Shown one piece after another: positions 2,627 to 18,219 of a stretch of DNA of 18,219 nucleotides. The position numbers were made by a program, and so were the translations under genes. The notes beneath the pieces were generated by a model, which saw nothing but the letters and a program-made list of their open reading frames with translations, made no database searches and was not told the origin of the DNA. Position 1 is the first letter of the stretch, and the number at the start of each line of letters is the position of its first letter. This DNA is from Kudoa neothunni (Eukaryota > Animalia > Cnidaria): the NCBI GenBank assembly GCA_964304625.1, contig OZ199841.1, forward strand, positions 1-18,219, given 5' to 3'.

Positions 2627-4002
2627 TACAGGAAAACTAAGTAAGTGATGATTGCTATGGTAGCAATAATACAGCCTAAGTAGCCTGGAATAAGGAAACC
2701 ATTAGACTCATAAAGCATACTAGGAACTCGTCTAGGGATTCCTAGGAGACCTGCTCCATACAAAGGCAGAAATAGAGCCATGGTTCCCACAGTAAAAAGA
2801 AGAAGGGAACCATTATGGCTCACCATTCCTAGCCAATGTACTCCACAAGCAAAGGCTAAAAAGGCTGATATAGCCATTACCTGGTGGAAGTGAGCAACCA
2901 CAAAGTAGGTATCGTGTAACAGAATATCTGCTGTAGATGAGGAAAGCATAATTCCTGTTAAACCTCCTCCTACAAATGTGGAAAGGAAACACAGCAGAGG
3001 TAAAAGGATAGGACGAGTCTCTAGGCTACCAGATCTTACGCTAACAAGTCAACTGTAGACTTTTATGCCAGTAGGAACTGCAATAGCCATAGTTCCTGAG
3101 GAAAAGAGCAGTTTCACTTCTAGCTCTAAGTCCACAGTAAACATGTGGTGCGCATAGACTAAGTAGCCTAAGACTCCTAGACAAGATACCGAGGAAATCA
3201 GTCCTTCCTTACCATATAGGCCCGAACTGGCCTCCAGTGAAGCAGACAACACTCCAAAGGAAGGCAGAATCACCACGTAGACCTCAGGATGTCCAAAGAA
3301 TCAGAAAAGTAACTGGTACAATATAGGATCTCCTCCTCCTGAGGGATCAAACCAGGAACTACTGGTTGTTCTATCTAGCAAAATACCTAATAAGCCTAAG
3401 GCTAAAGCAGGAATTGTGCCAATGAACAACACAGCAGCAACGAATTGAGATCATACAAAAAGACTCAATTCTTTACGAGAGAAAGGAAGGAGAAGGAGGC
3501 GGAAAGAGACTACAGCATTACTGCTGCCTGCTCCACTGGCAATGCCTAGAGCATGAATTCCAGCAATAATCACATCAATAGATGTTCCATGCTGAAGTGA
3601 AGCTAAAGGAGGATACATGGTTCATCCTGGACTCCATCCTCCAGGCAACCAGAAGATCACCAGCATTGCTGTAGCTCATTCCACACCCAAGAGGCCCCCT
3701 ATATTAACCCGAGGTCAAATAAAATCCCATGTTCCAGTTTGGCCAGGAAATCATCAGTTAAGGAAACCTTGGCCAATTGGAACAAGAACCAGGAATACAA
3801 ACACCAGGCCATGAGCTGTTAAAAGAGAACAGTAAATTTCCTCAGTAGTTTGTCCATGAGGAAAGCTTATTTCTGCTCTAATGAAACAGGAACATGATGA
3901 AGCCAAAATAGAGGCTAAAAAGGATATTCTCCAATATCCTATAGCCACTATTTTAGCTGAAAGAGAACTGGAAAAGGAAGCAGAAAGCAAGCTAAAGGAC
4001 AC
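2626..4002 (-). CDS. cox1: Cytochrome c oxidase subunit I, 458 aa
   Basis: Track ORFs 3754-4002, 3049-3276 and 2626-2949 join in one frame via TGA=Trp. Motifs: TAHG, [58 protein letters not shown]. GTG start, TAG stop. Confidence 0.98.
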
Positions 4003-4204
4003 AAACTAGCCATAGGCTAGTTAACATCATCAGAGACAGAGGAAAAGGATCTGATAAGATTCCTCATGCCAAATAGGATAAAAAGGTTCCAGCAACCATT
4101 ACTTTTGCCAAAGGAACAAGAATCCTTATTAAAGATAAGGTTCTTGCCCAATAAAGCAAAAGTAAAAGGAGCAGAACCAAAGGAAAAAGAAGGCATGATA
4201 ACAA
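3992..4204 (-). CDS. Unassigned 70-aa very hydrophobic ORF (nad4L-sized, about three TM segments)
   Basis: TTG start 2 nt after the previous stop. Protein MLSCLLFPLVLLLLLLLYWARTLSLIRILVPLAKVMVAGTFLSYLAWGILSDPFPLSLMMLTSLWLVCVL. Its TAG overlaps the cox1 5' end. Confidence 0.5.
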
Positions 4205-5199: not shown

Positions 5200-6202
5200 G
5201 GCTAAGAAGAACTGCTAAAGAGAACCAGGACTGTCCATAATCTTCCCAAAGGAAAGATTTGTTCACAGAGGGAATATATTTGTAACCGATTTTTACAAAT
5301 ATAAACAAGTAGGCTAAAAAAGCCCACAAAAGGAAAGTTGAAGCAATTATGCTGTCTTCCAAGGAAGTTTTCACTTTTCACACAAAGGAAAAAGGAAATC
5401 CTCCAAGGAGTCCAGCTATAAGACTTCAACTTAGGCTTTTTTGCCCTTGTGAACAAGCAAAAAGGAAAGATTTGGACAGACCATGGAAAATGCCATAGAG
5501 AAGAGAAAACCTAGGATCTCATGGCAAGAGGACATGGCAGATGTTCACAGAGAATGCAGTGCTTCAAGCCAGTATCCTTTTCCCATGAGACTCACGAAGA
5601 AGAAAATAAAGATGTCAAAGTGAGGAAGGAAGGAAAAGGATAATTGTTCCCTCCACAAATCTTAGCCAGAAAACTCCTTCTAACAATAGAGCTGTGGTCA
5701 AATAAAGACCACTAGCTACTATGGTGAGGGAGTGGACTAGGCTAGACATGGTGGCCACACCCTTCATAGCAGAAAGAAGCCATGATGAAAAAGGAAACAT
5801 TAGACTTTTTACAGAAAGGCTCAGGAAACAAATAAGGGAGTGGACCGGGGACATTGTTTTCCTAGGGAACACTAGGGATAATTTCCATTCCTGGTCAGCA
5901 TCTGCACTAATGCAAAATAAAGCACTAAAGCAGAAGAAAGTGGAAAGAGTGCTATGGACAATCATACTGGCTAAAGCGTTCCCAGTAGGCACTGTAGGCC
6001 TTCTGCCCACTATGGCCTGTGAGGAAAATCCCATCATGGATCATGATAGGCACAATCAGACAAAGTGGTCAGCTGAATAGAACAAGACAGCTGAACCACT
6101 AAGCAAGATGTACCATCATACCACTAGGGAAATTTTCCTCACCAGGACACAAAGGGTGGAAATAGCCCACAGTGCCAAAAGGAAACACAAAAGGGAAAGC
6201 AA
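5186..6202 (-). CDS. nad5: NADH dehydrogenase subunit 5, truncated (~338 aa)
   Basis: Single code-4 frame with ND5 signatures KSLMFPFSSWLLSAMKGVATMSSLVHSLTIVASGLYL (cf. KSAQFPFHSWLPxAMEGPTPVSALLHSSTMV), KRILAWST and HGLSKSFLF. TTG start inferred, TAA stop. Confidence 0.88.
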
Positions 6203-6911: not shown

Positions 6912-7825
6912 TAATAGCCAAGATGCATTGCATCAGGAGCTCCCTGAAAGCAATAAGAAAATCAAGCCTGGAAGACTTCAAGCCAACAAAGGAAACAATC
7001 TTCCCTAGCCAAATTAAAAGATACCAAAAGGGATCAAGAAAATATGGCCCAGGGAAGTTGCCACCAGAGCATGTTGGCTAAAGCCTGGAAAGAGTATCGT
7101 GGCAAAAGTCCCCTTAGGATAAAGAGGGTTATAGTGTGGCTTATAATAGCTCACTTCATTAAGAGACAAAAGGAAATAAAGTGAATCAATCATCGGTATT
7201 CCAGCACAGCAAACCATAGGAAGCTGAAACCTCCATAGATCACTCCAAACCCTCCTCCTAGATCTGATTCTGATTCAGGAATGTCTCAAGGGTGTCTTTC
7301 ACCAATGCACATCATGAGGAAAGACATCCCAAGACCAGGAAAGGCTATCCAGGACAAAAGTACTAAGGAGTCTTTCTCCATCATAAAAAGGCCATCAAGA
7401 ATTATGATGAAAGCAAGACAGAAAAGTACAAAGGAAAAGATGCCTTCCCCAAGGAACATCAGAATCCGGATCCTAGATCGTCCTAATGGACTGTAGCCAC
7501 GGAACCGGCTAGAGGAAAGGAGCATTAGGGAGCCACTTGTACCCAATAGAGCTAAGATAGCCAATCCAGGATCTAGGCAGTAAGGGAGAAAAGACAAAGG
7601 AATGGTTTCCAAACCAAGTGCTAAAAAAGCCATAATCAAAGAACTATAAGAGATTCATGGGTTTTTAGCACAAAGTTTAAAACCATCACTGGCTAATGTC
7701 AAAAATCCATAGCCAATGAGAGGTCCTGTTCTACCCATAACTAAGCCTAGAAACCGTCTGTCCACAAAGGATCCTAGGCCGGAACAAAGTGCTAAAAGAG
7801 CTAGAACCAAGGAAAAGGAAATCAA
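6911..7825 (-). CDS. nad1: NADH dehydrogenase subunit 1, 304 aa
   Basis: Motifs DRRFLGLVMGRTGP...ASDGFKL, YSPLGRSR, ERHPWDIPESESDLGGGFGVIYGG...LEY and LRGLLPRY match ND1 conserved blocks. TTG 7825 to TAA 6911. Confidence 0.93.
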
Positions 7826-8833
7826 TTGTTTTCCTGTGGTTCAAGCTCCTGGTGATCATGAAACCTAGGTTTCATGAGCGGATTAGCACTTTGTATCCAG
7901 GTAGTTTCTGGAGTGGGCTTAGCCCTAGGGTACCAGGACGGGAGTGCTCATTTCCACATCGAAGATGCGGAAAGGCACGGAGGATTTTGATCATGAAGAA
8001 GGGCTCACAGCACAGGAGCTACAATATACTTCTTAGCCATAATAAACCATATGGCGAGAAGCATATTTAGCTCAAGCTTAGCAAGCTCAACTTCATGATC
8101 CGGGAGCGTGCTCTATTTCCTTAGTCTAGCAATAGCCCTATTTGGCTATTCGCTGACTGAAGGAAATATGGCACGCTGAGGAATGACGGTAGTAACTTCT
8201 GTAGTCTTGAGTCTTCCAGCTGGAGAATCTATTTTGCCTGTTATCGTAGGAGACTATGGAATCTCCAGTTTAATCCTTCCTAGAGTCTATGCACTCCACT
8301 TCCTATTGGGGCTAATTAGCCCAATAGTAGTGGTGTGACACTCTCTAGAAGTCCACCATAACGAATCTAGTACAGAATTGGGCACTAGAATAGGCCCATC
8401 TGGAAAAGATTTCGCTAGTGGGGGAGGGATGAAGGATCTACTGGTAACAGCCTTCACCACAATTCTTCTGCTAAAAGGCTTTGACGATTCGTCTATTCTG
8501 TGAGGCCTAATTGAAGACATGAATGCCAATGACTGGCCTCAACAGAACAAGACTCCAGAACCAATAGGCCCAGAATGGTACATTTTACCCTACTTCGCTG
8601 GTCTAAAACTCACTAACATTTATGCCATTCTGGCATCGTTAGTGGCCATCATAGGGGCCTATTTGTTACGAGGAGGGCCTTGAAGCATCTTAGGCATCAT
8701 ACTAGGCTGAAGCTGTTTTATCTTAGGCAAATTAGCATTAACAGCTCATGAAAGCTTAGAGGAAGTTTATCTGATCGCTTTCATTCTCCTCTGGACAAGT
8801 TGGACATGCTGATCTTACCGAAGAGAAAGCTAG
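7826..8833 (+). CDS. cob: Cytochrome b, 335 aa
   Basis: Code-4 frame with WNLGFMSG, RAHSTGA...NHMARS, GYSL...WGMTV, ALHFLL...WHSLEVH and TPEPIGPEWY. All four heme His are present. TTG start, TAG stop. Absent from the ORF track because of TGA codons. Confidence 0.96.
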
Positions 8834-8865: not shown

Positions 8866-9053
8866 GTTGGAATAAAACCATCCTAAAGGATGGTTTTATA
8901 AAGGAAATTCCTCCTTTAAATCTTTACCTTTTATGAGGAAAGTTTTAAAGGAGCGGAGTAAAACCTCCCCTATGGGGAGGTTTTACAATGGATTTTTTTC
9001 CTGGAATAAAACATTCCTGAGGAAGGTTTTATAGGGGAGCCTCTTATTCCAAC
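8866..9053. repeat. Cluster of four related hairpins directly after cob, enclosed by a 10-bp inverted repeat
   Basis: ATAAAACCATCC-TAAA-GGATGGTTTTAT (8872-8899), CTCCTTTAAA...TTTAAAGGAG (~8911-8953), GTAAAACCTCCCC-TAT-GGGGAGGTTTTAC (8958-8986), ATAAAACATTCC-TGA-GGAAGGTTTTAT (9006-9032). Outer arms GTTGGAATAA / TTATTCCAAC. Confidence 0.85.
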
Positions 9054-9815
9054 TGCGCCCCATCCACCCCAAGGATTTATTTTAATAAAACTTTGTCTTT
9101 ATCTTCGTCCGCCTTGTCTCACTGGGGCAAAGGATCCTAGCAGGAGCCCCAACCACCCGCAGGTCTCTTTATTCCGTCCAGGAGTAAGAAAACCCGGGTC
9201 GGAGGGTCTTGAAGGATCCAAAAAGGTCCTTATTTGGTCAACATATGGGGTTTTTCCACCCATGTCAGAAAATGGAGTAAGAATAAGCACTTTACAGCCT
9301 AAAGTCTTATTCTTACTATGGGGGAGACACACCCATAAGTTGACCGTCATAAGGTCAATTCCCACCGTTCCGGCTTAGACGGGGCAAAGACGTCTCGGCA
9401 GAGACACTGCCCCGCCTCTGCCTAAAATACATTTTAATATTTCATAAATAATGCATTTTAGGCTCGAGGTAGGGGTACCTGTAAAGAATGTGTCTTACAG
9501 TCTTTACCTTGGCTAAACGGAGTTCCACTGTTACGACACAGGAACAGGTCCCTAGGCTTACAGTCCTCATTTGTCCCACATGGAATGGAGCCAGGAACCT
9601 TCGGTGTCGGATGGCAGGTAGGGTAGACCAGTCAGGCTACATCTCCTCCATCGCCTATGCCATGCGCGGAAAACTTAGTTCCGCTCTGAAAGGAGGTCAT
9701 GCCGATCCAAACTTATCCGATTCCTTTATGAACGACTGTGATTTGTGCAGACATGAGGAGGAGGAATGCAATAACGTGTCCGACATGATCAAACAAATTC
9801 CCATTCTGTGAACTT

Positions 9816-11675
9816 GCTGTCCGGTCGGACAACGGATTTTTCCCTTAAAAATAGGACAGGATTTACGATGGTTTCTAGGACACTCAGAAAACCATCTACA
9901 AGTCGATCAAAAGTCACTTTTAGATGGAGTTTCTGGCTATAACCTCAGAAAAAGGAGTTTAAAATGTAAACATTTTGAAAACTCACTTTCTGAGGTTTAG
10001 CGAAACCTCGGAAAATAACCAAGGATTTCCGTCATAGGAAAAAGTGATCGACTGCGTTGAGATCGAGGAAATACTCGGATCTCATAGGTGTACACCTTAG
10101 GAGTTTCGAGTTTCCATCGACGTTGTCGGCATACGACCAGTACAAAGAGAACGACCTAGGCTGATGGCCTTATGGCCTATCAGATGAGGCGTAGCCGATA
10201 GGGACGCAGCCTAATGGCAAGCTGGCAAGAGGCGCCACCAGAGCGGCTGAAGGGCCTCTGTCAATGTCGAGACAGGTTCGACGCTGACATCATGGTGACA
10301 GCTGTTGGTGAGCGAATAGTTGAACCAAGAGCTCCGACCCTAAGAGTCTCTATGGATGAAAATCCGTCAGAAAGGACTGTTATATGGACCTCGGATTGGG
10401 ATTCCAAATAGGGACGAGTAGGGATATTGGAAGGGGGTTCATCCCTAGGAGACCTTGTAACGGGCAGCCCTCCTGAATGGTCTATTCCTGAATAGGAACG
10501 ACAGCCCGAAACGAAGTTAGGGTATGATCTGGTTCACAAGGAGGTTACACGCCGACTGTTTCCGGGCTCGGCCCTCGGAGAGAGCGACCAGGGGGGGTTC
10601 CAATAAGGAAACTTCATTAAGCTTTCTCGTTCGGTAGGGAACTTGGAGTCTCCGGACGGTGAGCGAAGTTGGAGGTCACCTTGTTTTGACTAGAGGATAG
10701 GAACGAAGTTCGCCTGAAGTAGAATGTCCATTCTCCCCATGTGAGGTGACTCCGTGTGGCACGAGTGTTGCCGAAGTGCACCGTTGTCCTTTTACCGGGA
10801 CGGAAAGGCAGGCCATCAAGTCTGTTTGTGACGATGGACTGGCTCACAGCTTACGGGACTCCTAAACGATCAGAGATCGCCAGATCCGGAACATGTGACG
10901 TCCTCAATTAATACTCAACTCCCCCACATTACGACGATAGGATGTGAGGTAGTTTTGTTCCAATCCTAGTATTAATTGGGGGTCCGACTATTGTGCCTTA
11001 AGCGAGAGAGATTGTTCAACAATTACTTGGAGGATGAGACGGCGTATAGTCTCCCCGGGTGAAGAAAGGACGTCCCACTCTATGAGTCACCACAGTTTGG
11101 AAAGGCCGACCCGGCCGGTTTACAAAGTGCGGGCCTGCTGTTTATTGCAGCACGTTCATAGGGTAGTCGTGGCTAACCCTAGAGGGTCCGTTGGAGACCC
11201 TACTTTTAAAGGCCAAAGGGTGCGATCGTCACCGAGGATTCAACATTCTAGCGAGTCCTCCATGCCTAAAGTTCATGTCCTGTGGACCTTCCTTTAGGCA
11301 AACTTTTGCCAGACTGCCAGAGGCAAGCGTCCCAGATCCTATAGGGCACGTCACCTTCCTTAGGCCGTGTTATAAGGCCGGCAGGGAGGCAGTGACCTTC
11401 CAAGGCACCTGCTAGTACGGAACCAGGTTGAGTCAGGGGAAAGGCGCTAAGGAAACGCAGTAGGCGTGGATTTGGAATATGACCATGTACCATGGACTGT
11501 TGCAGCCAAATCCCGAGCTCATCGCGATGCAAGAAGCTCTGGTAATGTATCTGAATCGCGTATCGTGACTGGAGACTTAGGAGAGGATCGGGTGTGGCAG
11601 CGGTATTCCCTGCTCCGACCCATGCGAAAACAGTATGGCCTAACAACCGGTGAGGGTTGGGGAGGTTTTTCAGGA
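9816..11675. repeat. Left copy of a long diverged inverted repeat (partner 14529-16382)
   Basis: Collinear reverse-complement blocks include 9818-9831/16367-16380, ~10017-10190/~15975-16153, 10427-10668/15506-15748, 10927-10956/15235-15264, 11513-11564/14643-14694 and 11659-11675/14529-14545. Confidence 0.92.
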
Positions 11676-12232
11676 AACCCGATAGCCATGATGGAAGCCC
11701 ATACGTGTTAGGAGCGCGTTTTCTAGCGACTCACTTGTGTGCCCCGTACATGCTGGTGCCCAATGTCGGCCCACCGCCGAGGAGGTGCAGGACAAGGGGA
11801 CCTGCACCATGCCCAACTCCGCCTGGGCTGGTGTGGGACGAAATAGGACTGTGCGCATGCAGTACGCCACGAACAGGCGTTAGGATTCCTCCTCACTTGG
11901 GATCCTATCCCAGTTCGTCAAGCGGACGAAGAGCAGACAAACTTTCATTAAAATCCCCGTAGATATAAAATATCTAGGCGCATTTTATGTAATGTTTGTC
12001 GGGGAAGTTCGACAGGAGTTAACCACACGACCATCCTGGTCTGGGCATGGCAAGAGTCAGGCCCCACCGTAGGTACAGCCGGACTCGCAGTCTAAGCCAA
12101 CGTCTTAGACAGAGTCTAATCCTTTTGACCTAGAGTCTGCTTATCCTGGCTTAGATGCAGGACAATAAAGTCCTGTCCCTCTCCAGGGGGGACAGACTCT
12201 CCATCCAGGGCCCCCTTCGTCATGAGGATTTC

Positions 12233-12300
12233 AGCCAATAATTGGAGGAAAAATCCAGCGTAAGTCGCAGATTTCTTCGCTACGATTAAACTGGCTTTCC
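12233..12300. repeat. Inner inverted repeat, left arm (partner 14254-14320)
   Basis: AGCCAATAATTGGAGGAAAAATCCAGCGTAAGTCGCAGATTTCTTCGCTACGATTAAACTGGCTTTCC is the near-exact reverse complement of 14254-14320. Confidence 0.92.
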
Positions 12301-12405
12301 TCATCGAAAGAAGGGAGTCCTGTCCTGGAGCGCCGCAAGCAAGCGACCAAATCTCCAGACTCCTTGGACAAGAGTTTGGAGTAAGAGCCTCCGCTAGACA
12401 AAGCA

Positions 12406-12719
12406 AAGTCTAGCCTGGGGAAAGGTCAACAATCTAAGCACGACCTTTCCTCCCCCGGTGGAGTTGGAATCCACCTCCTGCTAAACTAGGCAGGACTTGT
12501 GAAGGGAGGCCGTCTACCAAAATAACCTTGGCCAATGAGACTGGATGCAATCCATCCGGAGATGACTCAGATGGTCAAGGCAGGGATGTCTACGTCCTGC
12601 TGGACACAATTAGCTAAGTCCAGCTTGGGGGAAGATCAATCATTTAAGCTAGATCTTCTCTCCCCCGGTGGAGTGGAAATCCACCTCTTTGCTGGCTAAG
12701 CAAGGATTTGTGTAGGGAG
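12406..12719 (+). ncRNA. Duplicated ~103-nt structured element (12406-12508, 12616-12719); candidate structured RNA or ssDNA motif
   Basis: The copies share CTCCCCCGGTGGAGT..AATCCACCTC and differ by paired changes (AGGTC/GACCT vs AGATC/GATCT; GCCT/AGGC vs GCTT/AAGC). G-U wobbles favour the plus strand. Confidence 0.6.
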
Positions 12720-12840
12720 ACAGACAGAACATGCCTGGAACATGGAGTCAAGATTCGTCCATCTTGCCTGGGGCTCCACGCCCTTACAGGGGTGGAAGAG
12801 CCGAGCCCATACCGGGCGAAGGGAGGTTGAGCTTTTCTCA

Positions 12841-13961
12841 ACCAGTGAAGGAAAAAAATAATATTTATTTTTCTTCTGAAAGGAAAAGAAAAAAATGATA
12901 TTTTATTTCTTCACGGAAGGGGAGAAAAAGAGACCCCATAAGGAAAAAAAAGTATAGTTTTTCTTATAGAAAAACAATACTATTTTCCTTATGGGCGATC
13001 GCATTTCTCCCCTAAGGGAAGGAAAAAATTTCATATTTTTCTTTGGCAAGGGTGGAGAAAAGTCAGACCAAGTTGGAGAGAAAGAAGGGAATTTTTCAAC
13101 CCAAGGAGGAATAAATTCTTCCTCTTCTCTTCCAACAAGGTCTGCTTTTTTCCCCCGCTAAGGAGAAAAAAATATATATATTTTTCTTCACAGGGGGAGA
13201 AAAACTAGACCAAGTAAAGAAAAAGTAGATCTTTTTCCCTATAAGGGAAAAGATCTAATTTTACTTTGTTTTATATTATGTAAATAATAGGGCTAAGAAT
13301 TTACATAAATATGTAAAGTAAAATAAATGATTCTTTTTCAAACTAAAATGGAGAAAAATTAATCATTTCTTTATATACTTGGTCTAGTTTTCTTCCCCCG
13401 AGGAAGAATAAAAAAATATTATTTATTTTTCTTTACTGGGGAAAAACTAAACCCTTTTCGGAAGAAAGAAAAAGGAAAGATTTTTTAATAAAACTTTCTC
13501 TTTTCTCTTACCGGAAAGGGTCTTAGTTTTCTCCCAAGAAGAAGAAAAAATATTATTATTTTTCTTCACGGGAGAGAAAAGTCTACAGACCAGAGAAGAA
13601 AAGAAAAAAGTAAATCTTTTTCCCTACAAGGGAAAAGATTTAATTTTACTTTGTTTTATATTATGTAAATAATAGGGCTAAGAATTTACATAAATATGTA
13701 AAGTAAAATAAATGATTCTTTTTCAAACTAAAATGGAGAAAAATTAATCATTTCTTTCCATTCTTCTATGGTCTGTAGACTTTTTCTCCCCAAGGAAGAA
13801 GAAAAAAAAATATATTTTTTTTCCATTCACTGGGGGAAAAAACTCTAGACCAGAGAAGGAAAGAAAAATTATCATTTTTTCTTTTCTCTTCTCATGGTCT
13901 AGAGCTTTTCTTCCCCCCAGGAAAGGAAAAAATATTATTATTTTTCTTTCCTTCTCTGGTC
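12841..13961. repeat. AT-rich array of six variable stem-loop modules alternating with a conserved ~30-nt hairpin repeat
   Basis: Repeat consensus GAAGAAAAAAATATTATTATTTTTCTTC. Modules bounded by GGGGAGAAAA...TTTTCTCCCC at 12919-13012, 13050-13156, 13193-13399, 13438-13535, 13570-13791 and 13832-13918. Confidence 0.9.
13221..13757. repeat. 152-bp near-identical direct repeat (13221-13372, 13606-13757) inside modules 3 and 5
   Basis: Direct comparison shows three differences, all in the first hairpin. Confidence 0.93.
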
Positions 13962-14253
13962 GAAAGTCTCGACCTACTTCGTCAAGAGACTCAGCTTCAC
14001 CTCCCCTTATCGGGTCGTATGCCGGGGCTGTAACTTCTTCTCCAGTACAAGATAAGGTCCCATAATTAACCCCTCCAAGGGAGAAGTATAAAAAGTAACT
14101 CTCCCAGATCATTCTTTTTATCTTCTGCCCTGGAAGGGCAGAATTAATGGACCCTTTCTTCTCCATGGAAGAAGGGCGCATAGCCCCTTTCCCCCTAGTC
14201 GAAAAGTATTTCTCCTGGGCCTTTTAACCTGGAGCTTAAGTTACCTATGACAA

Positions 14254-14320
14254 GGAGAGCCAGTTAAATCGTAGAAAGAAATCTGCGACTAACACTGGAT
14301 TTTTCCTCCAATTATTGGCT
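14254..14320. repeat. Inner inverted repeat, right arm (partner 12233-12300)
   Basis: Reverse complement of 12233-12300 with a few substitutions and one 1-nt indel. Confidence 0.92.
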
Positions 14321-14354
14321 TTTCTCCTTTGATAGGAAACTTTTCACAAAGGAT

Positions 14355-14387
14355 AAATAGCCCCACCTTCGGTGGGGTTATTTTTTT
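14355..14387 (+). terminator. Intrinsic-terminator-like hairpin with T tract
   Basis: AAATAGCCCCACC-TTC-GGTGGGGTTATTT running into TTTT. Function is inferred from shape only. Confidence 0.35.
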
Positions 14388-14528
14388 AGATGGCGGAACC
14401 TTGGTGCACGCACACTCCTCTAACAACAAGAGGTCATTACGTCTATGGCTCCTAGCTAGGCCTATCAACCTCCCCCTCTTCCAATCAGCCTCGAACCCTT
14501 CGTTTCCTCTAGCTTCAATACATCACGC

Positions 14529-16382
14529 TCCTGAAAAACCTCCCCGGGTTTCAGCCATCGACAGCCTATACTGCTTTCGTCACCGGGCATGGCGGGGCCT
14601 AACGCGTGCATCAACCGGGCCTCCATTCGTCCTACGCGTTGTGATACACGATTCAGATACATTATCAGAGCTTCTTGCATCGTGATGAGCTCGGAAAATA
14701 CCAGTAACGAGGCTACATGGCCATTTGCCATTGTGTATTTTCACGCCTACTGCACTGCACTCAAGGACGTCAGTGACTCAACATCCCTACGGTTCTGTCG
14801 CCATCCGGGAACTGGCCAAATCTCCTCACTACCGTTTCTAAAGAAAGCTCCATGATCCAATTAGGCCTACGTAATGGAGGGAACAGGAGATTCAGAAGTC
14901 AGTCTACTCAGGAAAAGATTGTTACACATTCGCACCGACACTTGACAAAGAGGATTGGACCCTAACGACCCTCTAGAGTTTTTCTATCTAAAACAGGTCC
15001 GGACCAAGGTTTTAGCTGGAGCTATCTACGGATACTCCACCAGCGTGACGCAATAAACAGCATCTCGTGTGAAAAACCGACCCAACAAGAGGTCTCTCAA
15101 GTTAGGCTCTTCCGGACGGAGAACGTCTCCTTACAAAAGGCTGAGTGGCGCCTCTCTGCGAAAAAGAGTTGAACTCTTATCTCGGTTTCCAGGTCAAGGC
15201 CACAACGGCATTTTCAAACTTTAAAATAAGGAGCAAAACTCCCTCACATCCTATCGTCGTAATGCCCGGACAAAGAAGCTTTCAAACACCTCATTCACCG
15301 GTCGCTTCTCTCCCTACGGACAACCTAACCCTCCGATATCCCCCTAAACTCTGGGGAGCTCATCACAAACAGATTCGGGGGGATTTTCTACGCTTTTGGG
15401 ATCCGTACAGGAACGCTTGAACAACGCTAACCGAAAGGAGTCCAATCTTGGGACATTGAGCCTGGCCACATAATCGCGTTATATTCAAAAGGGATCGCTC
15501 CTCAGCTTCGCTCACCTTCCGGAGAATCCAAGTTCCCTACCGAAAGTGAGAGCTTAATGAACCTTCCTCTTTGGAACCCCCCCTGGTCGCACTCTCCGAG
15601 GGCCGAGCCCGGAAACAGTCGGCGTGTAACCTCCTTGTGAACCGGATCATACCACTAACTTCGTTTCGGGCTAACGTTCCTATTCAGGAATAGATCTCTC
15701 AGGAGGGCTGCCCGTTACGCGGACTCCTAGGGATGAACCCCCTTCCAAACCCGCTCCTCGTTCTTTAGGCAGAAATCCCGATGTTCTCCTCAAACGATCA
15801 CATGACAGGGTTTTCTCCCTATCATCCTCCGAACGTCGGACGAAAGTGCTTTCTGACACTTTCCTAGCTCACCCTATGTCATCGCCGAACTTGTCTCGAC
15901 AGTCTTAACGCTCTTATGGGGCCGCTCAAGGACCCTCGAACGACTTCTTCTTCTACCTCCTATTCCAGTCGGCAAGCCTTATCTGATTAGGCCTTAAGGC
16001 CATCAGCCTAGCATAACGCTCATTTAGAGCTGGTCGTAAAACGACAACGTCGATGGAAACTCGTAACCCATAAGGTGTTCACCTATGATCTCCGAGGATT
16101 TCCTCGATCTCAACGCAGTCATTCGCTTTTCCTATGACGGAAAATCCTTGGTTGTTTTTGAATCCGTCAAGCCCTATTTTACAAACTGACATGAAAAAGT
16201 GTGTTTTTAGAGTTTTCATAAAAAAACTCATAAAAACCCCTCAATATGAGGAAAAGGACAGTTTTGTCAACAGGGACTTTATTAATTTTATAAAGAATTT
16301 AGAAAATTAACAAAAGTGTAGTTGACTACTCAAATAGTGTCCTACTTTTCTAAGCGTAAAGTTCGCTGTCCGACCGGACAAC
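14529..16382. repeat. Right copy of the long diverged inverted repeat (partner 9816-11675)
   Basis: Same blocks as the left copy, in reverse order and complemented. Confidence 0.92.
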
Positions 16383-16494
16383 CAGTGTTTTTAAGACTAC
16401 ATCTGGCTTAATAAAATAAGGAAAGCCATGAAGTCACGTTACCCACCCCACCACCCCTCATGCTATCGTACATTGTCACTTGTTCTTTTATTTG

Positions 16495-17091
16495 GCCCAG
16501 GGGGCCTAATTAACCAGTAGTGTGAAACGTCTCTAGGTTCCTCATTCTACTATGGCTAATTAGGCCCCCTGGGCAATAATTTGCCCAAGGGCCTTCAGTC
16601 CAGTATGCCATACAAAAGTGAAATGTTTGATGTTCACCCTTTGGGAGGCTAAGGAAGGTAAGGAGGCCGTCGGAAGGGCGTATTCTCATTACGAAGCCAC
16701 GCCCGGAGAAGGAATGTCCCTAGCCTGGTGGATGTGGAAGGATGACTAACAGACGCTCCATAAGGATCTTTGTTCGATCAGTAGGGAGAAGGTCCACCAT
16801 GACTGGTACAAATCTTAAAAGGATGGTCGTGTAACTTCTAGATGAGAGTTTTAATTTCCCCGTTGGAAATTAAAATTCACATCAAGATGTTCACCCATCA
16901 CCCCTACCGCGAGACTCCTAATTCCCCTTCACTCATCAGCTTATTCCGTCAATAGTAGCTTTGGTTACTATGGGAACTGGATCACAGGAAAGGAAAAAGG
17001 GATGAGAGTCCTATTGTTAGGAAGTCTCAAGGGAGCGTGGCAGAAACAAAGTTTCTGACACTTCGAGAGACTATTGGAACAATAGGATCTC
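16495..17091. repeat. Three long rod-like imperfect hairpins (16495-16574, 16822-16899, 17004-17091)
   Basis: GCCCAGGGGGCCTAATTA...TAATTAGGCCCCCTGGGC; TTTTAATTTCC-CCGTT-GGAAATTAAAA extended to GATGG/CCATC; TCCTATTGTT...CAGAAAC-AAA-GTTTCTG...AACAATAGGA. Confidence 0.85.
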
Positions 17092-17331: not shown

Positions 17332-18156
17332 TTAAATTGAAGACATTAAGAAACAAAATGTTACTATTTTCACAATGAAATGAACAAAATCTTGATGAGA
17401 AAAGTAACATCCATTCTGATGTCACACTGGACGGACTTTAGCCAAGATTAAATAGGAGAAAAGGATTAATCAAGGCCAAAGACACAAGTGGCAAGTTTGT
17501 CCAACCACTATCAGCCAATAATACTCCTGGAGGACTAAAGGACTGAAACTCATACCAGTCAGCATCAACAACTGACAAGGTTGAATAATCGCCTTTTGTT
17601 CTAAAATAACAAAGGCTATTCAGGGCAAGAAAGTCCAGACCAGAAGCACTATAAAGGCTTCAGCACAGGTGGAAAACGCTTCTAGGGCTAAAGCTCCAGA
17701 AGCCATCACAAACACTAAGCTTACAGCTGTGTTGTGCTGAAAAAGAAGTCTGCCCATTAAAGCCCAGTAAGACCAAACTGGCTGATATGTACCAGATCAC
17801 CAGATCTGCTGAGACGAAGTAAGAATCAGCAAAGAAGCATCAAAGCTAAGTCAGAAAGAAAGCTTTGAGGATCCTATAGCTGCCTCACTCCATCTACAGC
17901 AGATCCAAGATAGTGCCTTATGTCAATAAAGAATCCAGGAAAGACTTAAGGCACTATTGGAAATCATGGACAAAAGCAGCCATGGCCCATAAGACAAGAA
18001 AAGGGCCAGACTTCTTAAGGATCTGTACTTTAGCAGAAAAAGGAATAGGAGAACTTCTAGACAAAAGAGAAGGAGTCAAACGTCCCAAGAAAGGATAGCT
18101 AAAGCACAGATTGAAACCAAGCCCACCCTACTCCACCCTAATTGCTCTTCAGCCAA
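17332..18156 (-). CDS. 274-aa polytopic membrane ORF, possible nad4/nad2-type complex I subunit
   Basis: Only one minus frame is free of TAA/TAG over 825 nt; it has several TGA codons and is strongly hydrophobic. Weak antiporter-subunit motifs: WLLLFCLEV (TM Glu), YWHKALSWICCRW (Lys...Trp) and LMLTGMSFSPLVLQEY. TTG start inferred. Confidence 0.7.
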
Positions 18157-18219
18157 ATAAACTTATTTAGGAGTTTAAGACATGGACTTATGGAGCAGAA
18201 TTGAAATAGGAACTGCTGA

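Follow-up and report, generated by a model that had tools for sequence, protein, structure and literature searches.

What prevents the deletion of the large non-coding regions of myxozoan mitogenomes has been stated as an open question (PMC11034133). Sphaeromyxa zaharoni carries a duplicate of about 1.8 kb, and plasmids have been described in Myxobolus wulii (1,690 bp) and Kudoa iwatai; the non-coding minicircles of the latter two species, which are thought to carry the replication origin, derive from the kind of region considered here (PMC11034133). The non-coding half of Kudoa mitogenomes has been reported as unconserved among species (PMC4492933). By contrast, we found that at least 2 kb of this half are conserved as one element and that selection acts on its structure.

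The window analysed here, 18,219 bp long, is the complete mitogenome of the myxozoan Kudoa neothunni, in which rnl and rns occupy about positions 1-1900 and two non-coding paralogous copies, L and R, flank a central array (Table 1). Each copy continues the strand of its flanking genes, following the last gene of one of two divergent gene units. Sampled words of the interval 9600-14800 recurred at 98% in four short-read runs from one sample, probably the source specimen; therefore, the inverted elements are not an assembly artefact. A search for nuclear copies of the elements found none.

Table 1. Features of the K. neothunni mitogenome around the inverted pair
Feature	Position	Strand	Remarks
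cob	7805..8830	+	Final gene of + strand unit; 1 kb upstream of L
5' arm of enclosing duplex	9079..9137	+	Roughly 60-bp imperfect duplex with 11900-11954; encloses L
Left element L	9812..11675	+	About 1.85 kb; non-coding; homologues at same position in two other Kudoa
5' three-way junction of L	9818..9858	+	Alternative: simple hairpin with GGUC loop; 4/13 pairs changed on both sides across four copies
Homogenised core of L	10427..10668	+	92% identical to R core; near-saturated against other species
Helix, invariant AUUAA bulge, helix domain of L	10610..10670	+	Outer 6-bp helix has four sequences in four copies
Double hairpin with invariant 8-nt loop	11134..11181	+	Stems differ among L, R and K. 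septempunctata
8-bp linker helix	11468..11513	+	11468-11475 with 11506-11513
3' extension, L only	11680..12170	+	Conserved in three species, z 5-10
3' arm of enclosing duplex	11900..11954	+	Pairs with 9079..9137
Inner inverted block	12233..12301	+	91% identical to 14253-14320; symmetry extends inward beyond L/R
Central AT-rich hairpin-repeat array	12838..14100	.	Both elements point at it; GC skew sign switches here; putative origin or terminus
Inner inverted block	14253..14320	-	Partner of 12233-12301
Right element R	14529..16386	-	Inverted, collinear paralog of L
AUUAA bulge domain of R	15504..15564	-	Outer helix 5/6 pairs
Homogenised core of R	15506..15748	-	Inverted partner of L core
5' three-way junction module of R	16330..16386	-	Counterpart of L junction
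Conserved Kudoa membrane protein ORF	17335..18162	-	Final ORF of - strand unit; 1 kb upstream of R

A preliminary description had reported about a dozen reverse-complement blocks in strict order, and we confirmed eleven or more, all in order, with block identities of 73-100% and a self-BLAST E value of 6e-124 for 10012-10671. The sums of left and right coordinates, described as preserved, drift from 26,198 to 26,166 to 26,210 along the element, and a hand count of about 20 differences and a 1-nt indel in the 243-nt core agrees with our alignment of 242 nt (92% identity, one 1-nt indel). Between blocks, the linkers are near-saturated (z only 0.8-2.7 against shuffles), as expected from sequence called unalignable. 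Two pairs of hairpins with kept stems and changed loops (GTCG-tatgc-CGAC and GTCGT-aaa-ACGAC; GGCC-ataa-GGCC and GGCC-ttaa-GGCC) are present as written. Among 706 block positions, 100 differ between L and R, 48 of them by transversion; would-be L:R wobble pairs are balanced between the strands (25 and 27), so we see no sign of selection for pairing between the two elements, in agreement with the preliminary description. Length-conserved linkers had also been offered as evidence of large structured RNAs or long cis elements. Taken by itself, preserved spacing is weak evidence, since simulated small indels alone produced similar spacing (SD 13-41 nt over 1.85 kb).

Homologues of L occur at the same position in K. 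septempunctata (contig L011, about 2700-850, minus strand) and in a third Kudoa (contig L010, about 2565-730, minus strand), with end-motif to end-motif spans of 1,816-1,846 nt. Leave-one-out nhmmer searches recovered them with E values of about 1e-14 and 4e-6, respectively, and on-diagonal 14-20-mers shared between species numbered 3-10 against 0.4-1.3 expected, nearly all within the L/R blocks. The alignable set comprised four copies from three species (L and R of K. neothunni and L of the other two); R of the other species lies outside their contigs, and the between-species comparison rests on L orthologs. K. iwatai shares the layout, and one of its 3' hairpins is alike, but neither profiles nor structure models detected the element there. 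We found no homology in non-coding DNA of Enteromyxum leei or in distant Kudoa-like contigs, and a metagenome pattern search returned only chance matches, the pattern being too unspecific.

The core, which had been described as conserved, did not behave as such across species. The two copies in K. neothunni are 92% identical, yet the core is near-saturated between species (z about 2.5) where 4-fold sites stay 60% identical; copies are thus more alike within the genome than orthologs are between genomes. This strongly indicates that the two arms are homogenised within the genome, gene conversion acting on them in patches, rather than that the core is under deep constraint. An 87% inverted tract of K. 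septempunctata does not occur in K. neothunni, and L012, a k-mer contig of K. septempunctata, breaks at the 5' boundary of the core; K. iwatai likewise has inverted tracts of its own (86-93%). Conversion probably starts at sites that selection holds alignable between the copies, and the linkers have escaped it. We thus document an animal mitogenome whose inverted arms have probably recombined.

Several domains, but not the whole length, showed compensatory changes. The AUUAA domain contains one perfect covarying helix (0/30 nulls), and a structure model based on K. neothunni only ranked the homologous sites of both other species first (E 0.006 and 0.02), whereas a sequence-only model gave E 5 or no match and did not rank them first. 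For the 5' three-way junction, the shuffle test gave 1/500, with an alignment that had been fitted to the model. The R equivalent of the linker helix (14742-14735 with 14701-14694) keeps 8/8 pairs through five double substitutions. A core-closing helix is possible (10425-10432 with 10598-10605), and the equivalent helix covaries in 4/4 copies, although its computed pairing probability is near zero in wider context. The enclosing duplex has a K. septempunctata counterpart with changed sequence, and the 3' extension contains a conserved 9-bp stem (12091-12099 with 12147-12155) as well as a hairpin (about 11784-11808) that resembles one in K. iwatai. A whole-element search yielded a small, modest excess of shared helices. 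The models point to a folded shape that is conserved across Kudoa more than its sequence, as would suit an undescribed structured RNA or a module that controls replication. The proposal of large structured RNAs or long cis elements was supported in that L and R are non-coding, kept in congeners and equipped with covarying helices, the latter on the strand that the flanking genes use; it was not supported for most of their length, as most 150-300-nt windows fold no better than shuffles. Short motifs and several helices of L/R were shown to be under purifying selection across Kudoa. The coordinates and models given here open the element to testing.

Our leading reading, to which we give somewhat less than an even chance, is that L and R arose by an old inverted duplication of a control-region module, the transcript of which would fold and influence in cis either the priming of replication or the formation of 3' ends at the central array. 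Each polycistronic transcript would extend at its far end through the element and fold there. With one copy per strand, the folded RNA would serve the putative central origin in cis; a role as primer-precursor or R-loop RNA is the most likely, and a processing and termination signal is the alternative.

A duplicated control region could also act only as DNA, its displaced single strand folding during replication, with no function as RNA. The layout is symmetric around the central AT-rich array and the GC skew is mirror-image, both of which would suit this possibility, as would the richness of the mitogenome in hairpins, even in coding sequence, and the absence of about 290 nt from the R copy of K. 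iwatai. Concerted duplicate control regions composed of converted and independent parts are, moreover, known (PMC2820450). Against a purely DNA-level role, wobble pairs, read by eye only, lie on the presumptive transcript strand. The invariant 5-nt bulge and the three-way junction are also more typical of RNA, as are a helix with a range of 150-180 nt and a putative pseudoknot. We consider the DNA-only account rather unlikely.

The preliminary description had proposed two paralogous large structured RNAs; as free-standing genes, these would act in trans as RNP scaffold, ribosome accessory RNA or ribozyme. A structured 5' module sits at a sharp boundary in 4/4 copies, the L span stays at 1.82-1.85 kb and is free of large indels, whereas the adjacent spacer ranges from 919 to 1,530 nt, the duplex encloses L as processing stems do, and GC content is 50% against 33% at 4-fold sites. 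By contrast, rRNAs are 77% identical between Kudoa species and L is far less conserved, the second copy in K. iwatai is truncated, and an Rfam search of the elements gave no match, although the same scan misses the true rnl and rns of this genome. RNA-seq of K. septempunctata reported only rnl and rns as abundant, with no expression peak published for the elements (PMC4492933); three host RNA runs yielded zero Kudoa reads, even on cob. We regard trans-acting RNA genes as unlikely too, and slightly the less probable of these two accounts. There is a somewhat better, still minor, chance that Kudoa mtDNA encodes paired structured RNAs of about 2 kb, distinct from rRNA, tRNA and introns and of a kind not known from animal mitogenomes, that are released from the polycistron ends and have cores kept alike by gene conversion. 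A discrete RNA, if found, would represent a new gene class for animal mtDNA.

A neutral relic (the patchily converted remains of a decayed inverted duplication, of an integrated mobile RNA or plasmid, or of the ends of an old linear chromosome) would explain why most L positions diverge between species at or above the rate of 4-fold sites, and conversion accounts for the long blocks. The cross-species motifs and compensatory helices, however, demand selection and thus disfavour this improbable reading, which is already largely refuted. Pattern scans of viral and prokaryotic contigs found no relative of the elements, and the ancestor of Endocnidozoa was inferred to have had circular mtDNA (PMC9380995). 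A search for the mitovirus RdRp (PF05919) found no match in the elements, a weak test in which the control was silent too; with no protein-level similarity among the copies, we rejected an endogenised mitovirus or plasmid gene. A look-alike of mitovirus motif B near 10455 is absent from the K. septempunctata counterpart. Heavily edited or frameshifted protein cryptogenes would fit the purine-rich sense strand and the protein-like constancy of length, but they are very improbable, because L/R have no codon periodicity, carry stops in all six frames at random frequency and gave no protein-level match in cross-species blastp among six-frame translations, in line with the earlier non-coding assignment. 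Protein searches used stop-free pieces, since mitochondrial proteins contain TGA codons.

Among known systems, ColE1 RNA II and vertebrate mitochondrial 7S RNA with CSB II, which are folded primer-precursor RNAs, would offer a functional analogy only, as cis-acting folded transcripts upstream of an origin; we found no sequence or structural relationship, and the Kudoa element is 3-10 times longer, with one per strand. Mitochondrial rRNA, group I and II introns and RNase P RNA share with it length, purine richness, multiple domains, covarying helices and short invariant motifs, whereas we found no catalytic-core or universal motifs in the Kudoa elements, which have no host gene to interrupt. 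An nhmmer comparison with the genome's own rnl and rns and a nuclear 18S piece gave no match, and resemblances to SSU and LSU motifs were due to chance, being in the wrong order and not kept between species. Intron motifs had gone unrecognised before, and we concur: neither group had an Rfam match or an interrupted gene, the P3-P7 core motifs of group I, with their R and S elements, were absent by inspection, and candidate group II stretches, when inspected visually, showed no domain V pairing. The duplications and minicircles of other myxozoans, members of the same animal class, are non-coding, similar in size and proposed to carry a replication origin (PMC11034133), but no conservation or structure has been reported for them. 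Duplicated control regions of boobies and albatrosses (PMC2820450) also comprise two non-coding copies that resemble each other more closely within a species than they do between species, some parts being converted and others independent. Unlike these, the Kudoa copies are inverted, flank a central array as units of about 1.85 kb, are homogenised over only about 37% of their length, in scattered blocks, and carry covarying RNA-like structure.

The inverted pair of collinear elements noted in the preliminary description is a real feature of this genome. The left (L) and right (R) arms shared at least 11 blocks of 73–100% identity, with 92% identity across 242 nt of the core; the linkers between blocks scarcely exceeded shuffled sequences. 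The arms were also correctly described as non-coding: codon periodicity was absent, stops occurred in every frame and no protein-level similarity was seen between species. A protein gene was rejected as their identity on these same tests, and a cryptogene is very improbable. Membership tests placed the arms in neither group I nor group II introns, and we found no nuclear copy of the elements in the assembly. As previously suggested, nothing indicated selection for left:right pairing (25 versus 27 wobbles). The absence of Rfam matches in the arms is weak evidence because Rfam likewise missed this genome's own rnl and rns.

We reached relatives via a cox1 piece: K. septempunctata (contigs L011 and L012), a third Kudoa (L010) and K. 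iwatai (L013). In leave-one-out profiles, L had a positional homologue in L011 (E ~1e-14) and L010 (E ~4e-6). Short on-diagonal matches were several-fold to more than 10-fold above expectation, and nearly all fell within the L/R blocks, which make up 37% of the arm. The first-to-last motif spans were 1,846, 1,840, 1,830 and 1,816 nt, with a cob-to-element spacer ranging from 919 to 1,530 nt. Simulated small indels alone yielded an SD of 13–41 nt, so the constant span shows just the absence of large indels, and the preserved spacing claimed earlier is weak evidence by itself. The conserved element contradicts the published view of Takeuchi et al. that the mitochondrial non-coding half is unconserved among Kudoa species (PMC4492933). 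Public sequencing runs also contained mitochondrial coding halves of several more Kudoa-like species (L008, L015, L016 and L137), with the same gene order.

Between K. neothunni and K. septempunctata, 4-fold sites were 60% identical (distance 0.6–0.9) and rRNAs 77% identical. Orthologous L elements were near-saturated between species (z ~2.5; ~1.5 substitutions/site by simulation), and this included the core, which is therefore not deeply conserved as had been proposed, despite its L/R identity. Because the L/R linkers are as saturated as orthologous L elements, the duplication is old, and the core must have been re-copied recently. K. septempunctata had its own 87% inverted tract shared by the left and right sides, which K. 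neothunni lacked; the end of its k-mer contig L012 coincided with the start of the core, circumstantially fitting the onset of a second near-identical core. The layout was the same in K. iwatai, which had inverted tracts of its own (86–93%) and whose right copy was shortened. Concerted evolution by patchy gene conversion between the arms is strongly indicated, as is known in duplicate control regions (PMC2820450). Direct repeats in K. iwatai (L013, 969-1334 and 5382-5516) flank its left element and centre; their recombination would free a ~4.4-kb circle, possibly the reported mitochondrial plasmid.

Structure is selected at several places in the elements. The cleanest test is the comparison of structure and sequence-only models: a covariance model of the helix–AUUAA bulge–helix domain, made from the two K. 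neothunni copies alone, ranked the homologous L010 and K. septempunctata sites first (E 0.006 and 0.02, roughly calibrated), whereas the same alignment without structure did not. A neutral relic is improbable. The 5' module formed a three-way junction in which both partners of 4 of the 13 pairs had changed among the four copies (1/500 shuffles), in an alignment fitted to that model; a simple hairpin is the alternative fold. A helix–AUUAA bulge–helix was the sole perfect covarying helix in an all-anchor, all-offset scan (0/30 nulls) whose anchors were picked after the sequences had been inspected. One linker helix kept 8/8 pairs in R through five double substitutions. Each of the four copies can form the core-closing helix for 0–2 kcal/mol, but its computed pairing probability in wider context was near zero. 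A candidate pseudoknot pairing, a constant 153–155 nt apart, comprised only 4 bp in R, against 6–7 bp in the other three copies, and an imperfect ~60-bp duplex enclosed L in two species. The four copies compared are a small sample. A whole-element search found shared helices in modest excess only, and most arm windows, core included, folded no better than dinucleotide shuffles and more poorly than this genome's rRNA or cox1.

The window is the entire contig C4 of a four-contig, 40.26-Mb assembly and is the mitogenome of Weber et al., who described, for K. neothunni from yellowfin tuna, a circular mitochondrial contig of 18,219 bp and an assembly of 40.2 Mb in three chromosomes (PMC12239612). 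Its cox1 and that of Kudoa hexapunctata were 99% identical. The genes read under code 4 were cox1, cox2, nad1, nad5 and cob; there were also several membrane ORFs, and rns and rnl lay at ~1-1900. Gene units diverge from ~7820: on the plus strand cob leads into L, and the terminal ORF of the long minus-strand unit leads into R. L and R are thus sense-stranded, each at the distal end of its unit, and the two units converge on the centre. The very stable hairpins in coding sequence suggest a palindrome-generating process like the one reported in Nematomorpha.

Features of the arms and other non-coding or structured sites in the K. neothunni mitogenome
Feature	Position	Strand	Observation
L	9812-11675	+	
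R	14529-16386	-	
Core, L / R	10427-10668 / 15506-15748		
5' module	9818-9858		
Helix–bulge–helix	10610-10670		
Double hairpin	11134-11181		present in three copies
Linker helix	11468-11475 / 11506-11513		
3' extension of L	to ~12170		conserved
Extra inverted block	12233-12301 / 14253-14320		between arms
Multi-stem units	12402-12477, 12612-12687		direct pair, 80% identity, similar fold
AT-rich hairpin array	12838-14100		between arms; GC skew reverses in this central region
13-bp hairpin between T-runs	14355-14383	both	~150 nt beyond R end; terminator-like
Very stable hairpins in protein-coding sequence	2250-2850, 3900-4200, 6000-6150, 7950-8250		z down to -11
C-rich motif and 40-nt block	9053-9082, 9465-9507		upstream of L; conserved in three Kudoa species
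Separate ~180-nt non-coding element	16790-16975	-	75–81% identity in K. septempunctata and L010
Second copy of its 11-nt motif	~16630		in all three species

Outside the arms, the ~180-nt element was more conserved than the arms and contained a covarying hairpin; it is a candidate promoter or small RNA. The minus-strand G-run of the C-rich motif resembles CSB II. In the nucleus, an 18S copy (L006 ~1975; G000:C2, ~5.4267 Mb) stopped close to model position 1158, where unrelated AT-rich sequence took over; this sequence has a zinc-finger-like reading and may be an R-type retrotransposon inserted in 18S.

The arms are thus the two copies of a non-coding element in which motifs and helices are under selection; both lie in sense orientation and converge on the central array. 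Our leading, still tentative, interpretation is that the fold would form in the transcript and act in cis at that array, on priming or on the formation of 3' ends, with one copy serving each strand. In K. iwatai and M. wulii, regions of this kind give rise to non-coding minicircles that are believed to bear the origin, and a ~1.8-kb region is duplicated in S. zaharoni (PMC11034133). Structure acting in single-stranded DNA only is a less probable reading; the hairpin-rich genome speaks for it, and the G.U pairs of the helices, which by eye lay on L(+)/R(-), speak against it. Free-standing RNA genes acting in trans, akin to the paralogous structured RNAs first proposed, are marginally less probable again; published Kudoa RNA-seq, which singled out rRNAs alone as abundant (PMC4492933), speaks against them. 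A discrete 2-kb RNA from the elements is less likely than not. Kudoa reads, even for cob, were absent from three RNA runs and one DNA run of tuna.

No description of this feature was found in the literature searched. The known system most like L and R in its working is a duplicated control region under concerted evolution, from which they differ in orientation, size and RNA-like fold.
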